Of a DNA stretch of 64,000 nucleotides, positions 17,930-62,400 are shown piece after piece; the first letter of the stretch is position 1; the number at the start of each line of letters is the position of its first letter. This DNA comes from Pelomyxa schiedti (lineage: Eukaryota > Protista > Evosea). Location of the stretch: the NCBI GenBank assembly GCA_020536535.1, contig JAHLWZ010000820.1, positions 49,106 to 113,105 of the forward strand, written 5' to 3'. The position numbers and the translations under genes were made by a program. The notes beneath the pieces are model-generated. The model worked only from the letters and a program-made list of their open reading frames with translations, searched no databases and had not been told where the DNA came from.

Positions 17930-18798
17930 GGTACTGTTTCGCCTCTTTTTTTTCACGCCTCGTTCGTGTTCCTTTGTTGATCCTGGTTTTTTGTCCCCTA
18001 ATTGTTTCTCGGGGAGCGCCAATCATGGGGAGGGGTTCTCTTGCAGTTAGCATTTGTTTGCAGACACACACCCCCGTCCGGAGTTGATTCTGTCGTGGGA
18101 ATTTCACCCTGCATAGAACCCGTGGAATTAATTAACTGAGGAGGTACACCCAGTGGTTCCTTGGTCAGTCTTTCCCCGAAATAACTTTTTTTCCCGTTTT
18201 GAGTTGTGTGGAACCAATGAAGGAGACAGTGAGTGGTGGTTAGGAAGACATTCTCTGGTGCAAGAGGTTATCTTTAGTGCCCACAGGTTTGTGACTGTGG
18301 TAATGTGCTGCTGCTGCAGGTGGTGGCCTTGATATTTTCAGTTGAGGAAAGTGCAGTTACACACTTGCTGCACTAAGGACTGAGCATGTCCAAAAGTGTG
18401 CCATCTGCATGCATTCATCTAGGAACATATACTCTGGTTAATTTACAAGTGACTACGAGTTGTTCATATTTGCAGTAACATATGCCCAGGACAGGCAACT
18501 AAACTCACATAGGCCTGCAAAATACCAACATAAGCAGGCCACCGTGCAATTATATCCCCTTCTAGAGTGGTTTTCGGCACCACTATTGATGTCAATTCAG
18601 GGTTCTCCCTCAACAACAAACTCTGCTAATGAATTCGCGCCGGATTACAAAGTGTTTGTGGAGAACGGGCCCATATTGTTGAGCACAGATGTAAAACTGT
18701 ATTACCGAACTGTCGGTCATCACCACCAACAAGTTCGTGCGCAAAAAAAACGCCGAATAACGGATTCGTAGATTTCCCAGAACGACGTACCCACATCC

Positions 18799-20388
18799 AT
18801 GGGTAACACCAGCGAGCCAGCAGTTTCCCACGAGGATTGCCGTGTCAAAGTGCGTATGCCTCTGCGGCACGTGCGATCCTACCAGGCCCTGTCCCTGTCT
18901 TGTGGCCGGCACCCTCGGCTGGGCCCCCGCAGCCCCGCCAGGCTCCTCGACCCGTCGTGCTTGCACCTGGTCTGCCGCTTCTTCTTCCGGCTGCCTCCCC
19001 ACGCCTTCCCCCCGCCCGGCTCCTGGGCCTCCTTCGGCCCGCTGGCCGTGGTGCACCGCCCCGGCTGGAGCTCCTCCACCGGCGGCGGCCTCGGCCTGGT
19101 CGACGTATCGGCCCCGGGGGCCGGCCGCTTGGACGTGCCGTGGGTGCTGAGCGTGCCCCCTGAGTCCCAGGCAAGGGCCTACTACACTTCCCAGGGAGAG
19201 GGGCTGGCGCAGGCCCTGTGGGCCGCTGCCGGCGGCCGCGGCGGGAGTGCCAAGCCGGAGGAGGCGAGGGACGTCTGCAGTTGCGCGACGGTGTGTGGCG
19301 TGGGGTGTTCATATAAAGAGGGCGGGATGAAGGTGGCCCTTGGGGAAGTGCGTAGGATCCCAAGAGACACGGAGGTGGTGGTGAGCCTGAGGCTGTGGAC
19401 TGGAAGGAGTTCGCGCCTTGGCTCTGGCTCGTGTGCCGCTGAACTGGCTGTGGTCACCGAGGTGGTGAGGCTGAGGAAATCGCGAGTAACAACTCTGGAA
19501 TATACTAGGCAGTTCGACGCTGTTAAGTGGTATGAGCATGCCAGTGCTTTGGTCTCGGTGACCCCCTGTGTTGATAAAATACATGTAGCAGTTGTAGATA
19601 CTTGTGAGTGCTTAAGCAGAGTTGAACACATCACTCTGGACCAAGATTGCTCATACAAGTGGCTTGTTAGCATGGGTCTTGGCACTGTGGGAACGAAACT
19701 TTGTGCTGTGTTTGTTATTATGTACACGGAATGGAATCACATTGACACAGAAGAGAAGCGTCAGGAAATGCCGTCTGGCTTGGACATACGCCACCACTGC
19801 GCTGTAGTATTTGATGTCAGAGCCATGGCTGTAATCGGTTCTATTGACAAAGAAGGGAACATAGCCACAGCAGAGTCTCTGCTACCAAAGAACCTTCCAA
19901 CAGGAGAATCATACGCCTACGCCGTCAGTGATTCTCTGGAATTGTTCATCTGCAGTTCCCGGGAACTCTTTATATGTGATATTCTGTCCACCCCAGTCTG
20001 CAGTCCACAGAGGAAACTTACCTTTGAGCGCGGAAGCTGGACTGGGTTACTATGCTTTCCCCAATCACAGCGGCCCACTCTTGTGTGCTACTCAACAAGG
20101 GATGTTTTCTTCCTTCAGGAAAACCCATCGGGATGGACAATTGAACCTGAGCCCTATGGTTTCACGTGTATGGCCGGAATGGTGCGAGCCGTTCAGCCGG
20201 TGTTTTCTTCTCGTCCTGTTGCCACCACCTCCACAGAACAAAGAGCGGGAACCAGTGTGCTGATTGCAGCAGGACAGAAGACTTACTTGTGGGATTGTTC
20301 CCCTGTTAGTGGTGGCATTGTAAACCATGGAACGTGGGAAATGTTGAGTTGCTATGGAAGAGAGAACCTCATTGTCCTCGATTTGTGA
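18799..20388 (+). CDS. Intronless 529-aa hypothetical protein: N-terminal HPRLG motif, beta-rich (propeller-like) C-terminal part
   Basis: Long uninterrupted ORF with a very GC-rich 5' third. N-terminal ALSLSCGRHPRLGPRSPARLL. C-terminal strand-like segments (LFICDI, TYLWDC). Confidence 0.75.
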   Translation: MGNTSEPAVSHEDCRVKVRMPLRHVRSYQALSLSCGRHPRLGPRSPARLLDPSCLHLVCRFFFRLPPHAFPPPGSWASFGPLAVVHRPGWSSSTGGGLGLVDVSAPGAGRLDVPWVLSVPPESQARAYYTSQGEGLAQALWAAAGGRGGSAKPEEARDVCSCATVCGVGCSYKEGGMKVALGEVRRIPRDTEVVVSLRLWTGRSSRLGSGSCAAELAVVTEVVRLRKSRVTTLEYTRQFDAVKWYEHASALVSVTPCVDKIHVAVVDTCECLSRVEHITLDQDCSYKWLVSMGLGTVGTKLCAVFVIMYTEWNHIDTEEKRQEMPSGLDIRHHCAVVFDVRAMAVIGSIDKEGNIATAESLLPKNLPTGESYAYAVSDSLELFICSSRELFICDILSTPVCSPQRKLTFERGSWTGLLCFPQSQRPTLVCYSTRDVFFLQENPSGWTIEPEPYGFTCMAGMVRAVQPVFSSRPVATTSTEQRAGTSVLIAAGQKTYLWDCSPVSGGIVNHGTWEMLSCYGRENLIVLDL

Positions 20389-52853: not shown

Positions 52854-54826
52854 TTACAATTTCATACTCTGTAGTTCTTCCTCCAATTGTTTCCTCTTAG
52901 CTTCTCGTTCACGTCTCCTCTGGGGAAGAGAGTCAGTCAACCATACATAACTTAAGGGGTAAATTCTTACCTGTTCAAAGACTGAAAGAGTTCCCGTGGT
53001 TGCAGTGGATATTGGTGGAGAAGGCGAAGCAGAAGTCGAACCAGGTGCCTTGTCAAAGAATGAGTACTTAAACAGAAAGTACAGAACTCACGGATTGGAT
53101 TGAAGCTGGTGCTGTTGTTTTGTCTTGCCTATTTCCAGATGGGGCTGGGGGAGTGATTGCGGCGGTAGTTTGGGCTTCAGATTTCCTCTTTTCTTCAATA
53201 AGTTGCTGTTTTTGGGCCTGAGCCCGGCGGCGATTCTCTTCTTCCTCTTTTAATCTGGCCTGTTCCAGTTCTTCACGTCGGCAGTTCTCTGCTTCCTCTT
53301 TGATTCTTGCCTCTTCCCTAGCTCGTTGCAGTGCCGCTGCCTCCTGTTGCCTTCTTTCTTCTTCCTCCCTTCTGGAGCGTTCATGGGGATCCACTCCTAG
53401 AAGACCAAACATGTTTTCAGTTGTCTGGGTTACTTGGGGTGATGGAGTTCTTGTATTGGATGCAACTGCTAATTTGTCTCGTTCAACAACCTGAAGGAGG
53501 TGAAGGCAGAAAGCGAATTGTCGAGTGAACCTCTCGTTTGTTCGCAGCTTCCATCGCATTTGTGCGATTTCTTAAGAGTTTTTGTCTTTCTTCCGCCTCT
53601 GTACTATTTAGTACTTACTAATCTCAATGGGTAGTAGAACTACCGCGCTTCCTGGCGGCTGCCCATGCCTCAGCTTCACGGCGCCTTTGTTCTTCGGCTT
53701 TCTTTTCTTTGAGAAGCTTGTTTGCCTCGACTTGCTTGGCCACTTTATCTGCAGCAGCAGCTTTTTCCCTATAGGCTTTGAGTTGAGGGGATTACCTCTT
53801 TAAAGAGAGTGATTACATTAATCCTTTCAAGTAAACTTCCTTTTCTTTTCTTATTTGTTCTTCTCTGGCAATTCGAACTTTCTCTTTTGTGTCCTCTATC
53901 TAATGATGGTAACAGTAAAAATGTGACCAAATACAATTACGGCTTTTCTTTGTCTTTCTTGGAGTTGCCGATCTTCCCTTAGTGATGAAAAATTAGACAA
54001 TGTTGCCCCAGGAAAGGACCGTACTCAATTTGTTGTCGTGTAACTCTTTCTATCTCTAGTCTCTCAGCTTCGATCCTTTTGGCTTTTTCCACACGCCTAT
54101 TAACATGTCCACATAGAAATGAAGATTGTCGAAGCAGACCGTTTTTCAATGTCAGAGTGCATTTTAGAAGCCAGTGACCTGGATTTTTCTTCTTGCTTGC
54201 GGAAAGCAATCTCATCTCTTTTCCTCTTCTCTTCCATTTTTGCGCGGACCTGACAATAACATGAGTTCCTGTTTTAGAACGAAAGAACAAACCACGGCCT
54301 TTCTTTTCTCCACTTCAATCAACAACCAGTTTGAGTTTCCTTTGTGTCTGGCAACTTCTTTGGCCCACAGCTCTTCTTCGAGCTTCTTGTTATCGTCCTC
54401 CTGTTTTTTTCAAAAGTGTGAGGATAATGGCTTCTTCTAATTTGGAGTTCGGCGCACACCCTCTTCTTTCTCATTTCAGCAATTTTGTTGAGCACCCTTT
54501 TCTTTACTTCAGCTTCCACTTCAGCCAGTGTCATTCCCTCCATGGACTAGCAGCACTTAACAATAACAAAAAAAAAAACAACAACATAAGATACAAACAA
54601 AGAAAAACTAATGACACACGTCATCTAAGGCAGTATCTATCTCTTCTTCCTCTTCCTCCACTACCTCCTCCTCTTCCACCTCCACTTCCTCATACTCCAC
54701 CTCCTCCCCATCACCATCCTCGCCCTCTACTACTACCTCTTCCTCTATCTCCACCACCTCCTCCACGGTATCGTCCGCGCAACCAGGAGCTGCAGTAACC
54801 ACCGTATCAACCGTCGTGCGAGACAT
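52854..54826 (-). CDS. Uncharacterised E/K/R-rich coiled-coil protein with acidic N-terminus
   Basis: About 11 short exons joined in frame by GT-AG introns, with charged helical content throughout. No domain recognised. Confidence 0.7.
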
Positions 54827-54870: not shown

Positions 54871-56376
54871 CTACTCTATATCGGGCAATCGGGCGTTCTG
54901 TGCCTGTGCCGTCGGGAATGAAGCGGCTAGCTTGGATAGAGCCAAGATCGCCATGTGTGTGTTGCGGCCCCCTTGCCCAGGCGGGGTGCTGGGTGGCAGT
55001 GTGATGCTGACAGTAGCCTCGCCTCCAAATACAATTGCGGATTTCTTGGCTGTGCTGCTACTGTGAGTGGTGGTGGTGATCAGGGCCAGGGCCAAGTCGG
55101 CTACGTTGGTACCCGTTGGCCCGGTTTCGAGGGCTAAGGTGCTGCCGCCCACGAGCTGGAAGAAGGACGCCGAGTCGAAGCGGGCGGCGTAGTGCTGTGG
55201 GTCTGCTCCTTTGGCCGCGGATAGGGCCGGAGTTGTGAGGGAGTCTGCAATGGCCCCGGCTAGGTGTGAGTGCCCGTCCACCCCGTCTGTGGAGAAGAAC
55301 GCCAAGGTGACGCGGTCGCCCTGGGAAGAGTCCGCTACGAGTGAAACTGCTTTTACAATTCGGTCGACTTCCACGTTCGCCTCAGCGTGCATTTTGGTGC
55401 TGTTGATTTGGACCTTGTAGCCTAGCTCCTCCGCGCGCAGTGCGGCTGCAGATACCGCGGTATCATTATTTGACAGCAGCACATACTGTGACTTTTCGGG
55501 GGAGAGAAGCGGGGAGCAGACCCGCAGCGTTTCGTGATCAGTTCGCCCCACGTTCTCATCTATGTACTCCCTGACGCTATTTGGCACCGATTCCCACACG
55601 CCATACTCCAGCAGTACGGCTTTGGCATCCGCAAAGGTTGTCCCATCACAAACCGTTGGCCCGGAAGCTATCACAGAGGGGTCATCCCCCAGAACATCAG
55701 ATATGGCCAATGTGACAAAGGCACCACACCCAGAAGCAGCGATTCGCATCCTTCCGCCCTTGAGCAAGTCAATGTGCTTCCTTACAGCGTTTATCTTCGA
55801 GATTGGAATAGGGGCTCTCAGAAGCACCGCGTTTGTTTCCCTGTAGTCCCTGAGCGTGATTCTCGGGTCAGCCGGCACGGCCATCATAGCCGACCCACCA
55901 CCAGATATCAGTCCAATCACGAGTGTGTCATCACTCAGCCCCCTTAACAGATCGCACATGGCCCTGGCCCCAGTCTCGCCGTCCTCAGTTGGGTGCGGGT
56001 GGTCACTTTCTACAAGTTTGACGCGGCTCAGGCCCGGGCACAGGCAAGAATTATGGGAGCCCTCCGCCGACCCACAATTGCGTGCGTTGAAGCTGCAAAG
56101 TGACCCCCGGGGCACGTTGATGACGCCGGCCGAGATTCGCGTGGGACCCAGGACCTCGGCCAGGCTCAGTGCGCACGTGAGGGAGGCTTTACCGCCACCA
56201 ACGAGGACTACTTTGGGGTAACGATTGAGGTTGTAGGGGCGGCCGCATACGACGAGCGTGTCGCCTGATGGGCTGAGGGACACACTGCGCTTGATTACAT
56301 TATGGGGCAAAACCGCCTCGACAGTTCGCTTCACGATATCGTGCACGTCGCCCAGCACTTCGTCAGTTGTGTCCAT
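54871..56376 (-). CDS. GLYCTK: Class II (MOFRL) glycerate kinase, intronless, with permuted MOFRL segments
   Basis: GGGKA, HPHP, LISGGGSA, INAVRKH..LKGG, ISDVLGDDPSVIASGPT; then TDGVDG, AGA, TGPTGTNVADL, and only afterwards GGEATV and GGRN. Confidence 0.92.
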   Translation of the reverse strand: MDTTDEVLGDVHDIVKRTVEAVLPHNVIKRSVSLSPSGDTLVVCGRPYNLNRYPKVVLVGGGKASLTCALSLAEVLGPTRISAGVINVPRGSLCSFNARNCGSAEGSHNSCLCPGLSRVKLVESDHPHPTEDGETGARAMCDLLRGLSDDTLVIGLISGGGSAMMAVPADPRITLRDYRETNAVLLRAPIPISKINAVRKHIDLLKGGRMRIAASGCGAFVTLAISDVLGDDPSVIASGPTVCDGTTFADAKAVLLEYGVWESVPNSVREYIDENVGRTDHETLRVCSPLLSPEKSQYVLLSNNDTAVSAAALRAEELGYKVQINSTKMHAEANVEVDRIVKAVSLVADSSQGDRVTLAFFSTDGVDGHSHLAGAIADSLTTPALSAAKGADPQHYAARFDSASFFQLVGGSTLALETGPTGTNVADLALALITTTTHSSSTAKKSAIVFGGEATVSITLPPSTPPGQGGRNTHMAILALSKLAASFPTAQAQNARLPDIE

Positions 56377-56433: not shown

Positions 56434-59400
56434 TTATTCTACAAGAGTTACTTGAACTGCCAAAATTTCAGTGTTTGTTCGCGCAGAGAAGTACTTGATT
56501 GTGGCTTGTCCTGGTGGAACCTAGACCGTGATTAGGAGGGTGTGGAAATTGGGTTAAAGGGTTGGGATTCATGCCTTCTTAAGGTCTGCTTTGGTGAAGG
56601 TTACATTTCCCAGGTCACCTTGCGGCGTAACAACACCCTTGGATGTTATCTGGTAGCAAAGGCATCTACCATTGCCATCATAAATACCAATCCAGTCACT
56701 TTTGTGTGGCTGGACCGAGGATAATTCCCAGGTAACCACCAGCTCATGGTCATACCTGTGATATAATGCCATATTATACTCACATACATGAAAAATAAAA
56801 GGTGAGAGCTATGCACACTCAATGTGGTCCTGGGGGGAGCTGAGCGACAGGCAATCGGACATTGGAAGAGCAACGGGATTTGACCTCCCGGAGTGGATCA
56901 ACACCTCCCCGCCACTTCCTCCTCCGACTGATGTGTCCACGGTACATCCAAATTTGAAGTATCTGGCTTCGTATGTCTGGGTGCCTTTGACGTAGGGTAA
57001 TGGGCCTAAAATCACACTGGACTGGGAACTGTGCCGGTTTTTTTTAATGATGTACTTTCGGTTGTTCTTCTCGTTCTGTGTACGTAAGCATGCATTAACA
57101 GATAAGAGGAAGGCTCAACCTTGTTGTAAACTGCAATCCAATCCATATCGGGAACAGAACTATGAAACTCTGGCTCGTACGAAACGATGATGTTGCGATC
57201 CTGTAGAGTTGCTGTTAGGGGAACAAAATTCCCCACAAACAACTCTTCACTTCTTTGTTGAATAATTGTTTTACTCTGTAAAACTAGATTCAAATGGTAA
57301 AACCCATCTGGAAGCCCACAGAAACTGTTACAACCAGATCGGGTAACTTTCAAGGTTAGTTGCTGAGGCACACTGAAAAAGACCCACCAAATTTGTGCGC
57401 AGCGATAATTTTATCAGTGTAGTCCAGAGCAAACAAATGAATAGACACACCAAGTATTGGCAGATAGCCGTTAATTTCAAAGGAATAGGAGATTCTGCCC
57501 TCCTTCCAATGTAAAAGGTAGGTCCACAAGAAAAAGGCTTACCTCTTCCGCTGCATCCAGGAGTATCTGCCCGCCTTCTGGTGCATGTGCAGCTTTAAAC
57601 CGGTTTACTTCTATAGAAGGACGAATAACTTGAATACCTGAAATTACATCTTCTGTGGATAGGGTGACCTTGCGGCAATTCTTGAGTGAAAGCTGTTCAA
57701 CAGTCTTCAAGTAACACAAGCGAAGGACCCCTTCATTAGTGAGGTTGCACCAATCGAGGTTCAAAAATCTCAAACAAGGACAAATATCTGGTAGTACACT
57801 AACAGTTTTATCAGAAATGCTGCACTTGGAAAGGTCTAGATGTTGCAGGGAATGCCAGATCACCCCCTTCTCCAGAAAAGGTGCGTCTGTCACTCTGTAA
57901 CACAGATTGAGGAACAGAACCACAAGGCTTGCATTGCAACTCTTAGCAACTTCGACCACACCATAGTCACTTATCTTCGTGCAGCCAGAGAGGTCAAGGG
58001 CAGTTATTTGTCTACAATATTTTGCAATGGCACACAATGTAAGGTCAGTGAGTCCAACGCAGTAGGAAACCTCCAGAACAGACAAGGAAGGGCTTGCTTC
58101 CAATAATGATACAAAACCCCTATCCGTTATGCCAGTACAATTGTTCAAAGAAACAACTGTTAGCCGGTGTGCCGAAAACTTAGCAAGCTGCTGAAGGGTG
58201 TAGCTACTGACTTGAATCGATTCACTACGGTAAAAACCAATCGTTGTTATTCGGCCAAGGAGGATTGGTGCACATCGTTCCGCACCTATAAGTAGGGCTT
58301 GCTTAGCAGTTGTGTGTAAATCTTTTTCTGTGCATTGAGGAAGCAAAAAGTTGACCACTTCTGCTTGGTCCTGATCAACAGCACTGTATAAGGCTTCACT
58401 GATAAGACGTGGAACAACACTGGGGTCCTCCTGCTGTTGCTTATTCAGTATTGCACTAACGCCAACCACACTTCCAATAGACGCAGGCAGTGACACACTC
58501 ACTTCACCAACGTTCTTCCTTTGGAGGATGTGTATGACTTTCTGTTGTCCTGTTATATAGGCTTCTACGAGCGCCTGGTTTGAGTCAGCGGTTCCTATTC
58601 TATTCATTACATCCTCCAGTAGTAGCAGGTTCCCATATCTAGCAGCAGGTTCCAACAGCAAGTGGAAGATCATTGGAGGTCTGAAGATGAGTTTTGACAT
58701 CGTAGAAGGTGCAATGCTATGTATGAATTTTTGTGTTGCAGTTTCGCCAAGAAGGGTTGCTAATTCAACAACAACGTCTACATATAGATTTGCCCTCCAC
58801 TGCACTCGGGTGGAGTAGCTTCTACCGCTTTTATCCATATTCTTTTCAAACTCAACTGTACGTTGAGTCAAGTTATTAACAAACTTGGTGAGAATGATAT
58901 CGAAAACTGCATCACTTTGCTTGTTTTCTTGTGCAATATTTACAAGAATTATAAGCAAAACACGTTGTTCCAGTGCAAGACTTATCTCCGTGTTAAAGGT
59001 CTTGGCGTGCCACAGTGCTTTAGCAAGAAAATAATCTCCGATCATGTGGTGGACAAATTCTACAGTTGGGTTTGGTGATATGACATCACATTCTTCCGAG
59101 GGAGATTTAGATACCAAACCACTCTTGAAGGCAAAACTGTCACATTTCCTGCCAAGCTTCAAAGTGAATGTAGGTTGTTTGTGGAGGTAAGATTTGAGAG
59201 CAAGTTCACGGAGTCTTTCCATTGCCTCTTTCTTATGTGTGTGGAATAGATTCTGGTCCATCAAAGGATTCTTATTTTGCATCCGTTGCCAAAGCCACTC
59301 AATTAAACTTTTTAGGAACAGTTTCAAGGTTACACCAACAGGATTTTCACGTCGTAGCGATTTAATTAGCGTGCAAGCCAACTCACAGTAAAGAGGAATC

Positions 59401-62400
59401 GAGATAAAGTCGAAGAAATCGGGAATGGATTGCATTTTATCCACTGTCCAGTACTGATCCTGAGGGTTGCTATCCACGGTAGAGAAAAACTGCTTGATGT
59501 ATAGCATCACAGTCTCCATGGTCCAGCGCTCAATTCTGGTAAACATAGCCTGTGGGAAGAGAGTGTGGAGATTTCCTTTATTTCGGGAAGTGAAGATGGC
59601 CCATTCCACCCACTGGACGTTCCCGATTCTCAATGCTGACAACCAGTCTTGGATGCCAGATGATAGAGAATGTTGCTCGAGTTCATCAAACCCATCAAAT
59701 ATCCACAAAACATTGCTGGAGTTTCCTTGTATAAACCCAACAACTTCAGGGTCAGAAATTCCAATAGCTACAAGTAAATCCTGTACTTCAGTTGGAGCCA
59801 ATTGGAGTGCATTGAACTTCCCTAATTCTACCACAATCACTGCCTGGAATTGGGTCCAGTTATCCAGGCCCTGCTTTCTGCCTAATTGCTTGCACAAAGT
59901 GGACTTCCCAGAGCCACCAATTCCCTCCAATACTACCAGTCTTTTTCCTTCCTTTCTGGCCATTTCCCACAACTTATCAATAGAGATGCTATACTGAATT
60001 CCAAGAGCATGATTACTGCTGATACAAGATAACTTGATGTTGCTAATAAACATCCTCTCGAAATCAGTAGAAATTGTGCTGTTATCGCCAGCGAGAAATG
60101 ACATTGTAGAGTAGAATTGCTTATAGTGAATTCTGAGTTTTTCGCGAATGGGGGTGGCACTTGGATTTGCTGGCTGAAAACTCAATACAGGTAGTTTTAC
60201 CTTCTTGCGAGAGTGAATAGCCCACCTGATAGTCTCCACTTCTTTTTTTACTGTATCCCGTATTGTCTCAGTGACACCTCGAAGCCGAGCTTCATCATAC
60301 TCAAAGCATGCTGTGTTGATTGTAGTATTTCCCATGAAATATATGATAACTGGGTCCCCCTGTTTCCCGGGAAAGAATACTCTTACACTTTCCTTGATAT
60401 CAAACTTTGTGGACAAAAGAATTTTGTCAGCTTCTCGTACACTCACATAACCTCTATCCACTGCATTTCTCAATTCTTCACATCCACTTGCTCCACCACT
60501 CGCATCCATTACAATGACTACATCAACTCCTCTACCTACAAACGCGGGAAATGGCACGTTGAAGTCTATTCCAGCATCTCTCATATTCCCGACATCAGGA
60601 TCAGTGCTTGTAGCACCACCTAAAAAGGACTCAATTGCCGGTTTTGTGGAGTCAAGCCACGCCTCATTTGGCATCATCCTCTGCACAACATGAGGAAACA
60701 TGTTCTGAACAGTCGGGAGAACGTGAGTCCGCCAATCAAAGGCAAAGGCACTGCCGCACACAGCCATGAGATGAGGGATACTGTCATCATGGAGTTGTGA
60801 CGTGGACTTGATATACTTCCCAGATTTGTGCACTGTGAAAGGAGTGATGGTCACCCAATCCCATCCAATCTTTCCAGCTGCTTCTGGGCATTCCATGCTT
60901 TGAACAGTAGTTGGTCTGGTACTTATCGATGCAAGAGGGGGTAGTATTACACTTGGATTGTTCACTGCCTCTGAGGTGCTAGATAGTGAGCTTCCTGTTG
61001 TTTCAATAGCTGGGATAGACAACACACTTCCAGTGGGTGGAGTTCCAGTTGATATTGCCGTGGAGAAGGAATGCTGTTCGTCACAGGAAGAGGAGGTAGT
61101 TCCTGGTCGAGACTCTGTTATAGCTGTGCAAATTGGTATGGGGTATGCTCCACTTAGGAGCTTTTCGGCAGAGGCACTCAGCCTCAATGAAAAAGGATCG
61201 ACGTCATCTGGAAGAGCCTTCTTGAGCATCAAATTTGCCAAAAATTTGGCCCATGCCGTCATTACACTGCCGCCTCTCCCTTCAGATAACATAGATATTG
61301 CACCAGCTATCGTATTGAATCCAGTATCCAGAGTAAGGAGGTGAGTTAAATGAACTAGTAATCGCGGAGTCCACTTGCTACTTTTGGTTTCTTTAAGCAT
61401 GGATACCAACCCTTTGTGTGTGTGCCTTTCACTGTTATATCTACCACCCAGAACCCATGGATCATCTTCCGTTTGTCCACTGTGAAAAGGATTTCCGGAA
61501 GAGGCAATCCACTGCAATAAACACCAAGTACTGCCACTGAGTCCTGCACAATAAGTAATGCCATCAAGAAGACCAATAGAACTAAGGCCGTTTAGGAAAG
61601 CTATCATGCTAACCATTGCTCTCACACCACCACCACTTCCACATACTGCGACACAGGGCATATCACTCTCTGCAGAAGGTTCTCCAATAAATGAAGCAAG
61701 TGCAGCACGGCATACAACTTCCCTGGCTTTCACAGCTTGACTTTCTTGTTCTAGGGAATTCCTTTAAGTACGAAGTAAACGTCCAAAAACAAAAGGGAGA
61801 TGGGGAAAACAGGTTCGAAAGGAGAACGTACATGTTGATATCTTGCAGGAACGAGCTGCTAGTTCTCAGAGCATCTGCAAGGTGTTACAACGAAAATCAT
61901 TTGAAAAGGAAAAAAGCAGAAGAAGGGGAAAAAAAAAAAAGAAAAAAAAGAACCACTTTGAATACCAGCAACAGCGATACTCAACCTGCTAGGAGTTTCA
62001 TCGTTCAGTGAAGGTGACATGGACTGAGCCTTTGAGACCATATTAGACCCCAAAGCAACATCTTTCTCCTTCCCTCCAGAAATGTCATTTTCCACGGCAA
62101 TGGAGCTGCTGCTGGTACAACAATAAGGTGGCATTACAGGAGGATCACTCAGTGGTAGTTGTGGTGCAGGAGACATCGGGGCAGAAGGTGCTTCATCTGT
62201 TATTACTGAAGAAAAATCATGAAATTCCTCACTCCCACCATTCACCTGCTCTGGTTGCAATTGCTTTTCAAATTCCCGTTCCAACTCCAATTTCGATTCC
62301 TGATCGCAATTGGTCCCCGACGTCATGCACTTGTCGGCCACGTTCGGTTCAGGTGGCGGCGGGGCATCGATTGGGCACCAAGTTGGCGGAGATGGAGGCC

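Follow-up and report, generated by a model that had tools for sequence, protein, structure and literature searches.

The window analysed, a 64,000-nucleotide stretch of a Pelomyxa schiedti contig, carries on its reverse strand one uninterrupted, intron-less open reading frame (ORF) of 501 amino acids plus stop, which Pfam assigns to the class II glycerate kinases (GK-II; DUF4147 + MOFRL) (Table 1). The DUF4147 profile, PF13660, is matched with E 3.8e-61 (207 bits against a cut-off of 23) and the MOFRL profile, PF05161, with E 7e-21 (74.9 bits against a gathering cut-off of 28.3). As judged from the sequence, the family match is far beyond chance. The MOFRL match is split into two stretches, the best of which comprises profile positions 29-106 only and lies at aa 346-427. 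The motifs of the amoeba kinase follow each other in the order TDGxDG, TGPTGTN, a linker of 12 residues, GGEATV and GGRN. This order and these positions had been claimed in the first-pass annotation and were confirmed by the ORF translation, by Pfam and by out-of-order phmmer matches to 1X3L; that all motifs are intact and in frame likewise holds, as they lie in a single uninterrupted ORF.

Table 1. Features of the kinase gene, its surroundings and related loci. Positions are those of the window unless a locus is named.
Feature	Residues (aa)	Position	Strand	Basis or remark
Kinase ORF	501 + stop	54871-56376	-	ORF translation, Pfam
N-terminal Rossmann-like DUF4147 domain	11-272	55561..56346	-	Pfam PF13660; GGGKA loop (K63), SDV (D227)
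Cys-rich insert, about 18-20 aa	about 91-113	56038..56106	-	alignments; pLDDT about 54
Start of C-terminal domain: strand 296-302, helix, strand 321-324, helix 333-347		55336..55491	-	AlphaFold2 secondary structure and 1X3L alignment
TDGVDG strand through TGPTGTNVAD and next strand; D364, N424	354-435	55072..55317	-	MOFRL profile positions 29-106
TDGVDG	363-368	about 55290	-	
TGPTGTNVADL	418-428	about 55110	-	
Linker TTTTHSSSTAKK	between TGPTGTNVADL and GGEATV		-	
New linker, Thr/Ser-rich in amoeba	436-444 and flanks	55045..55071	-	alignments
Relocated strand-loop-helix unit: GGEATV (E453), GGRNTH (R471)	445-486	54919..55044	-	equals 1X3L residues 323-356
GGEATV	451-456	about 55026	-	
GGRN	469-472	about 54965	-	
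Upstream neighbour, NACHT + LRR protein		57477-61733	-	N-terminal phospholipase (PLA2_B) match
Acidic ORF	72	54608-54826	-	Glu/Val-rich
ORF without Pfam match	538	18772-20385	+	GC3 0.62
Decayed kinase fragment	about 70	G000:C605:82440-82547 (locus L002, about 1398-1602)		outside the window
Fused dehydrogenase gene after bacterial kinase	about 1020	L083:9547-12591		
Fused dehydrogenase gene after bacterial kinase	about 1020	L088:6436-9516		
Fused dehydrogenase gene after bacterial kinase	about 1020	L084:1635-4679		

The contig around the kinase gene is eukaryotic, with the NACHT-LRR protein and its phospholipase domain as a neighbour and WD40 fragments nearby. At 0.66, the GC3 of the kinase exceeds that of every other long ORF in the window, of which one reaches 0.62 and the rest lie between 0.31 and 0.50. 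The ORF with 0.62, of 538 amino acids, is thus likewise above most of the window. The extremely acidic ORF of 72 amino acids starts about 45 bp past the kinase stop, after an A-run, and is partly covered by an RNA-library contig at low depth. DNA contigs show two alleles or variants within it, at 54632 and 54662.

Among the PDB sequences only two relatives were found with phmmer, PH0495 of Pyrococcus horikoshii (1X3L) and TM1585 of Thermotoga maritima (2B8N), and both are canonical. The solved canonical enzymes have the order GGE, GGRN, TDG, TGPTGTN, and the same order is seen in the TM1585 alignment. The GGE strand and GGRN helix, which precede the TDG strand in TM1585, come after the last strand in the amoeba kinase. 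PH0495 is the best solved match in sequence (E 1.7e-49) as well as in structure, but its sequence matches are out of order, query residues 358-435 matching chain residues 362-435 and query residues 447-484 matching chain residues 323-356. Such out-of-order segment matches were the check proposed in the first-pass annotation. Query residues 322-334 correspond to chain residues 286-298 of 1X3L, and helix 333-347 then runs straight into the TDG strand, at the place where canonical enzymes have the GGE strand and the GGRN helix. The C-terminal domain of TM1585 is a six-stranded mixed sheet of order 126345 (Cheek et al., PMC1079889), and the amoeba kinase departs from the canonical chain order through this sheet.

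The stretch is present in four public runs, all from one study, and both new junctions lie inside contigs of three DNA runs and of one RNA run. The whole kinase gene is contained, without gap or joint, in DNA contigs of 22.6 kb and 11 kb, which show no difference at the junctions. A contig of 600 nucleotides from the single-cell RNA library is identical to positions 54873-55472 (0 differences) and has both junctions inside. The RNA library has a depth of 14 across this contig; in the neighbouring bins, both within the gene towards its 5' end and in the downstream spacer, the depth is 0. Misassembly, which the first-pass annotation had named as the reading to be checked at the junctions, is ruled out by these contigs, although the per-run contigs are not independent of the assembly because they stem from the source study. 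The RNA evidence for the gene is at contig level, and with DNA carry-over possible it suggests that the kinase is expressed.

The protein collection searched with the amoeba kinase held 5.8 billion proteins. The best 120 BLASTP matches are 456-512 amino acids long, apart from two longer gene calls, and have 43-47% identity at 91-97% query coverage. They are all colinear with the amoeba kinase and none is canonical (0/120), which rules out a rearrangement private to the amoeba. The exact order TDG, TGPTGTN, GGE, GGRN was found in 110 of the 120, the other 10 failing one regular expression through a motif variant. These bacterial proteins carry names such as glycerate 2-kinase, DUF4147 domain-containing or glycerate kinase type-2 family, and are identical to the amoeba kinase in order, breakpoints and signatures, with 46-50% identity over about 95% of its length. 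The named sources are uncultured Spirochaetales, Deltaproteobacteria/Syntrophales, Thermoflexales, Caldilineaceae, Dehalococcoidia and Thermodesulfobacteriota; examples are P0024 (Spirochaetales), P0092 (Thermoflexales), P0116 (Syntrophales), L004 (Dehalococcoidia) and L005 (Caldilineaceae).

In species-representative genomes the permuted type accounts for 5 of the best 80 loci (42-46% identity), three of them full length and permuted and two cut by a contig end. The other 75 have 29-38% identity, most matches ending near query residues 430-445 and few reaching about 470, and all 45 proteins translated from these loci are canonical. A class II kinase was found in 129 of 301 Chloroflexota species genomes sampled evenly; the permuted type occurred there only in the centre genome, which was picked for being permuted. 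In metagenomes the permuted clade comprises at least about 130 clusters at 90% identity. A query of the junction only (aa 412-462) gave 60 matches from 172 word candidates, all colinear, which is no real estimate of clade size. Shape search of the ESM Atlas gave a single canonical cluster, aligned to residues 1-440. On these sequences the permuted form is rare among genome-sequenced species, yet it is a real clade. No intermediate with two GGE/GGRN units was seen among 165 sequences inspected, class II glycerate kinases as a whole accounting for at least 7,700 database matches. The natural segment permutation suggested in the first-pass annotation is thus real and in frame, as shown by the contigs and by at least 118 colinear bacterial homologues, the other proteins of the same order that it had proposed to look for; the event itself did not take place in this genome but defines a bacterial clade.

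The proposed active-site residues of TM1585 are K47, D189, E312, R325, D351 and N407 (PMC1079889). All six are present in the amoeba kinase, as K63, D227, E453, R471, D364 and N424, respectively. In an alignment of 119 sequences K63, D227, D364, E453 and R471 do not vary, and conservation of N424 is 90% or higher; G61, G62, K63 and A64 of the GGGKA loop are invariant too. The AlphaFold2 model made with this alignment has pLDDT 87.8 and pTM 0.87. It shows a strand at 427-435, a loop, a strand at 445-452 and a helix at 471-486, with pLDDT 84-95 in the moved unit.

Foldseek found, by target, only 1X3L (TM 0.74) and 2B8N (TM 0.77). With VIA-align, 393 residues were aligned to 1X3L (Z 31.9, model residues 5-436) and 374 of 414 to 2B8N (Z 30.9, rmsd 2.9 Å, model residues 4-434), and the next unrelated match had Z 6.3. 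According to the model, the two-domain GK-II fold is kept, as in the class II (MOFRL family) glycerate 2-kinase TM1585 (2B8N / 1O0U), and the first 435 residues superpose on the canonical structures. About 40 target residues are left unaligned; ordered alignment to TM1585 leaves out about 40 of its residues and model residues 445-486. This is as expected if the strand-helix unit is the sole topological difference in the modelled structure. Since ordered aligners respect sequence order, the position of the moved unit in space is predicted from the AlphaFold2 model and conservation alone.

The moved unit is strand 3 of the canonical sheet with its helix. It carries the catalytic Glu (GGE) and Arg (GGRN) and has left its usual place, which follows the second strand of the C-terminal domain and precedes the TDG strand, for a new one behind the last strand, where a linker of 9-12 residues attaches it. 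Strand 3 and the last strand, strand 6, are neighbours in the canonical sheet, which would make a short link from strand 6 to the re-attached strand 3 geometrically plausible. The moved strand probably keeps its old position in the sheet, beside the last strand, and would so rebuild the active site; the conserved catalytic residues and the confident model are as expected if the same site is rebuilt.

The permuted proteins differ from the canonical ones by four signatures. GGRN is followed by TH in 117 of 119 permuted proteins and by QE in 40 of 45 canonical proteins, TDGxDG by HS and PT, GGE by ATV and TTV, and TGPTGTN by VAD and VND, respectively. TM1585 has QE after GGRN, and GGETxV, where the amoeba kinase has TH and GGEATV. 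All four permuted signatures (TH, HS, ATV, VAD) are carried by the amoeba kinase together with the permuted order. The spacing from TGPTGTN to GGE is 29 residues in 105 of 110 members. Two inserts are found in all 118 bacterial permuted members but not in the amoeba, PVTKTG after the catalytic SDV and an insert of 7 amino acids after the second strand of the C-terminal domain; PVTKTG is also missing from 45 of 45 canonical proteins. The bacterial linker, TNPxxPxRK, is Pro-rich and 3 residues shorter than that of the amoeba. The Cys-rich insert is specific for the amoeba and absent from all bacterial permuted and canonical relatives in the alignments.

A maximum likelihood tree of the query, 26 bacterial permuted and 45 canonical proteins, built on all columns, places the permuted proteins on one side of one branch (SH-aLRT 100), and the permuted/canonical label changes once against about 22 changes expected with shuffled labels. 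A second tree, restricted to the 300 columns that precede all rearranged segments and rooted on a canonical leaf, again has one change on one branch with SH-aLRT 100. There the amoeba is sister to all 26 bacterial permuted members (support 97). The amoeba branch is long (0.65-0.88). As the amoeba kinase lacks both inserts, like the canonical proteins with respect to PVTKTG, the permutation is older than the inserts, and the amoeba lineage left the clade early or had a donor that is not among the sampled ones. Indels and the second tree agree that, by sequence, the amoeba kinase falls outside the sampled bacterial crown group. The permutation probably arose once, in bacteria; a plausible route would be that the MOFRL segment was duplicated and its redundant parts were then lost.

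The amoeba assembly has one DUF4147 match, the kinase gene itself, and no class I glycerate kinase was found in it. Nor was a second, canonical kinase copy found, only a decayed fragment corresponding to query residues 90-159. It has 41-81% identity by piece, a frameshift and a TAG stop, includes the Cys-rich insert, and appears to be a partial copy that is decaying within the nuclear genome. The closest relative of the amoeba kinase among the 5.8 billion proteins has 47% identity. The absence of introns, the GC3 of 0.66, the identity of at most 47% and the decayed copy fit a gene of bacterial origin long resident in the nucleus. Against the GC3 argument stands the similarly high value of the ORF at 18772-20385. 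Pelomyxa schiedti would have gained an early-branching member of the clade horizontally, probably from bacteria, and no other glycerate kinase of class I or II was found in its assembly. Since the amoeba kinase has a long branch and stands beside the bacterial clade as its sister instead of within it, the donor and the direction of transfer are only inferred. Recent transfer from a Syntrophus-like endosymbiont is unsupported, the Syntrophales protein P0116 being 48% identical and part of a derived subclade.

The amoeba enzyme is predicted most likely to convert ATP and D-glycerate to 2-phosphoglycerate and to feed glycerate into lower glycolysis; substrate and product would be as for TM1585. 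The NCBIfam equivalogs score far under the cut-off for it (136 against 550). In three of eight bacterial contexts read (P0086, P0001 and P0009) a gene of about 1020 amino acids lies directly downstream of the permuted kinase, with FAD_binding_4, FAD-oxidase_C, 4Fe-4S (Fer4) and CCG domains and thus GlcD/GlcF-like. In the gene calls P0001 and P0028 the kinase is fused with the start of the dehydrogenase gene (FAD_binding_4). Near the bacterial permuted kinases there are also GntR/FCD regulators, transketolase genes in split or whole form and a gene of the glyoxalase family, and one permuted kinase adjoins genes for PGK, phosphoglycerate mutase and TIM. The bacterial context fits a kinase of C2/C3 hydroxy acids, most simply a glycerate 2-kinase. 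The kinase, FAD/Fe-S dehydrogenase, regulator, transketolase and glyoxalase genes may form an uncharacterised hydroxy-acid module. The partner dehydrogenase was not found in the amoeba assembly with that dehydrogenase as query, and co-transfer of the bacterial neighbour was likewise not found with that query.

An assembly artefact or chimeric contig as the source of the permuted order is suggested by the oddity of that order alone and by the origin of all runs in one study, not independent of the source assembly; with gapless contigs of 22.6 kb, 11 kb and, from the RNA library, 600 nucleotides across both junctions and more than 118 unrelated metagenomic proteins of the same order, it has next to no probability. 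A different arrangement of the real protein is conceivable, a domain-swapped oligomer in which each sheet is completed by the C-terminal strand-helix unit of another subunit. Units that are tethered by a short linker at the end of a chain, as this one is, can often swap, and the oligomeric state in the family varies between monomer and dimer (Table 1 of PMC2063504). The AlphaFold2 monomer, however, puts the unit in cis with high pLDDT and a pTM of 0.87, and the spacing from TGPTGTN to GGE is strongly conserved, which makes swapping improbable. About equally improbable is a permutation in the amoeba independent of the bacterial one (convergence), or a vertically inherited eukaryotic gene. The missing PVTKTG and 7-aa inserts and the position outside the sampled bacterial members would agree with it, but the breakpoints are identical, the four motif signatures are held in common, identity is 46-50% to permuted and 29-38% to canonical proteins, columns outside the rearrangement give the grouping a support of 100, and no closer relative exists among the proteins searched. 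The human and fly enzymes, moreover, are colinear with TM1585 (Fig. 4 of PMC2063504).

More weight, though still that of an unlikely alternative, belongs to the possibility that the permuted clade has kept the fold and taken another job, with another hydroxy-acid substrate or product than the canonical glycerate 2-kinase, the bacterial partners perhaps being the FAD/Fe-S (GlcD/GlcF-like) dehydrogenase and transketolase in an uncharacterised pathway. The changes beside catalytic residues (TH for QE, HS for PT and, in bacteria, PVTKTG after the catalytic Asp) agree with this, as do the dehydrogenase gene directly downstream in three of eight contexts, the P0028 fusion and the GntR/FCD and transketolase genes close by. 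It is opposed by the conserved catalytic residues, the member beside PGK, phosphoglycerate mutase and TIM genes, and, in the amoeba, by the lack of a detectable partner dehydrogenase and of any other class I or II glycerate kinase found. A joint reading can be put forward only tentatively, and is more doubtful than not: in-place re-ordering of MOFRL, non-circular for the domain, would have made an undescribed monophyletic GK-II clade with altered catalytic-loop signatures in anaerobic uncultured bacteria, where a GlcD/GlcF-like FAD/Fe-S dehydrogenase and transketolase would be its partners in an uncharacterised hydroxy-acid pathway, and an early-branching member would have been captured by an anaerobic amoeba as what is now its sole glycerate kinase. 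The explanation preferred here, held with good though not full confidence, is that the gene encodes an expressed class II glycerate kinase of the permuted clade, whose catalytic strand-loop-helix unit has moved and whose active site is rebuilt, that the permutation had a single origin in bacteria, and that the gene was acquired horizontally and serves a TM1585-like reaction.

The bacterial members and the amoeba kinase differ in features of their own, PVTKTG, the 7-aa insert and the shorter Pro-rich linker on one side and the Cys-rich insert on the other, and in the gene context, several bacterial kinase genes lying upstream of a GlcD/GlcF-like dehydrogenase gene that was not found in the amoeba. 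As in classical permutations, of which eukaryotic glutathione synthetase is an example (cited in PMC2876114), the same fold and active site would be obtained from a re-ordered chain. Classical permutations are circular for the whole protein or domain, whereas the cyclic re-ordering seen here is confined to the MOFRL segment, which stays in place, and the permutation is therefore non-circular both for the C-terminal domain and for the protein. The alignment and tree of class II kinases by Kehrer et al. 2007 (PMC2063504), in which human and fly are colinear with TM1585, do not mention a permutation. No description of the permuted order, as an already known subfamily or otherwise, was found in the literature searched, which covered few subscription journals, so that 'undescribed' is provisional; texts pairing glycerate kinase with circular permutation concerned unrelated contexts.

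The order is a real natural permutation in a known enzyme family, common to a bacterial clade that has gone unremarked. It is uncommon for a natural permutation to carry an interior catalytic strand-helix unit to the end of the chain. With the catalytic residues kept and a whole clade permuted, the family offers a natural test of how much strand rewiring an alpha/beta domain tolerates before its active site is lost; the permuted and the canonical form are each represented by more than 100 natural sequences. Of the MOFRL domain in such proteins only about 80% is recognised by Pfam, NCBIfam and ordered structure aligners, so that the catalytic Glu and Arg may be overlooked. To the central carbon metabolism of the amoeba the gene adds a probable bacterial acquisition.
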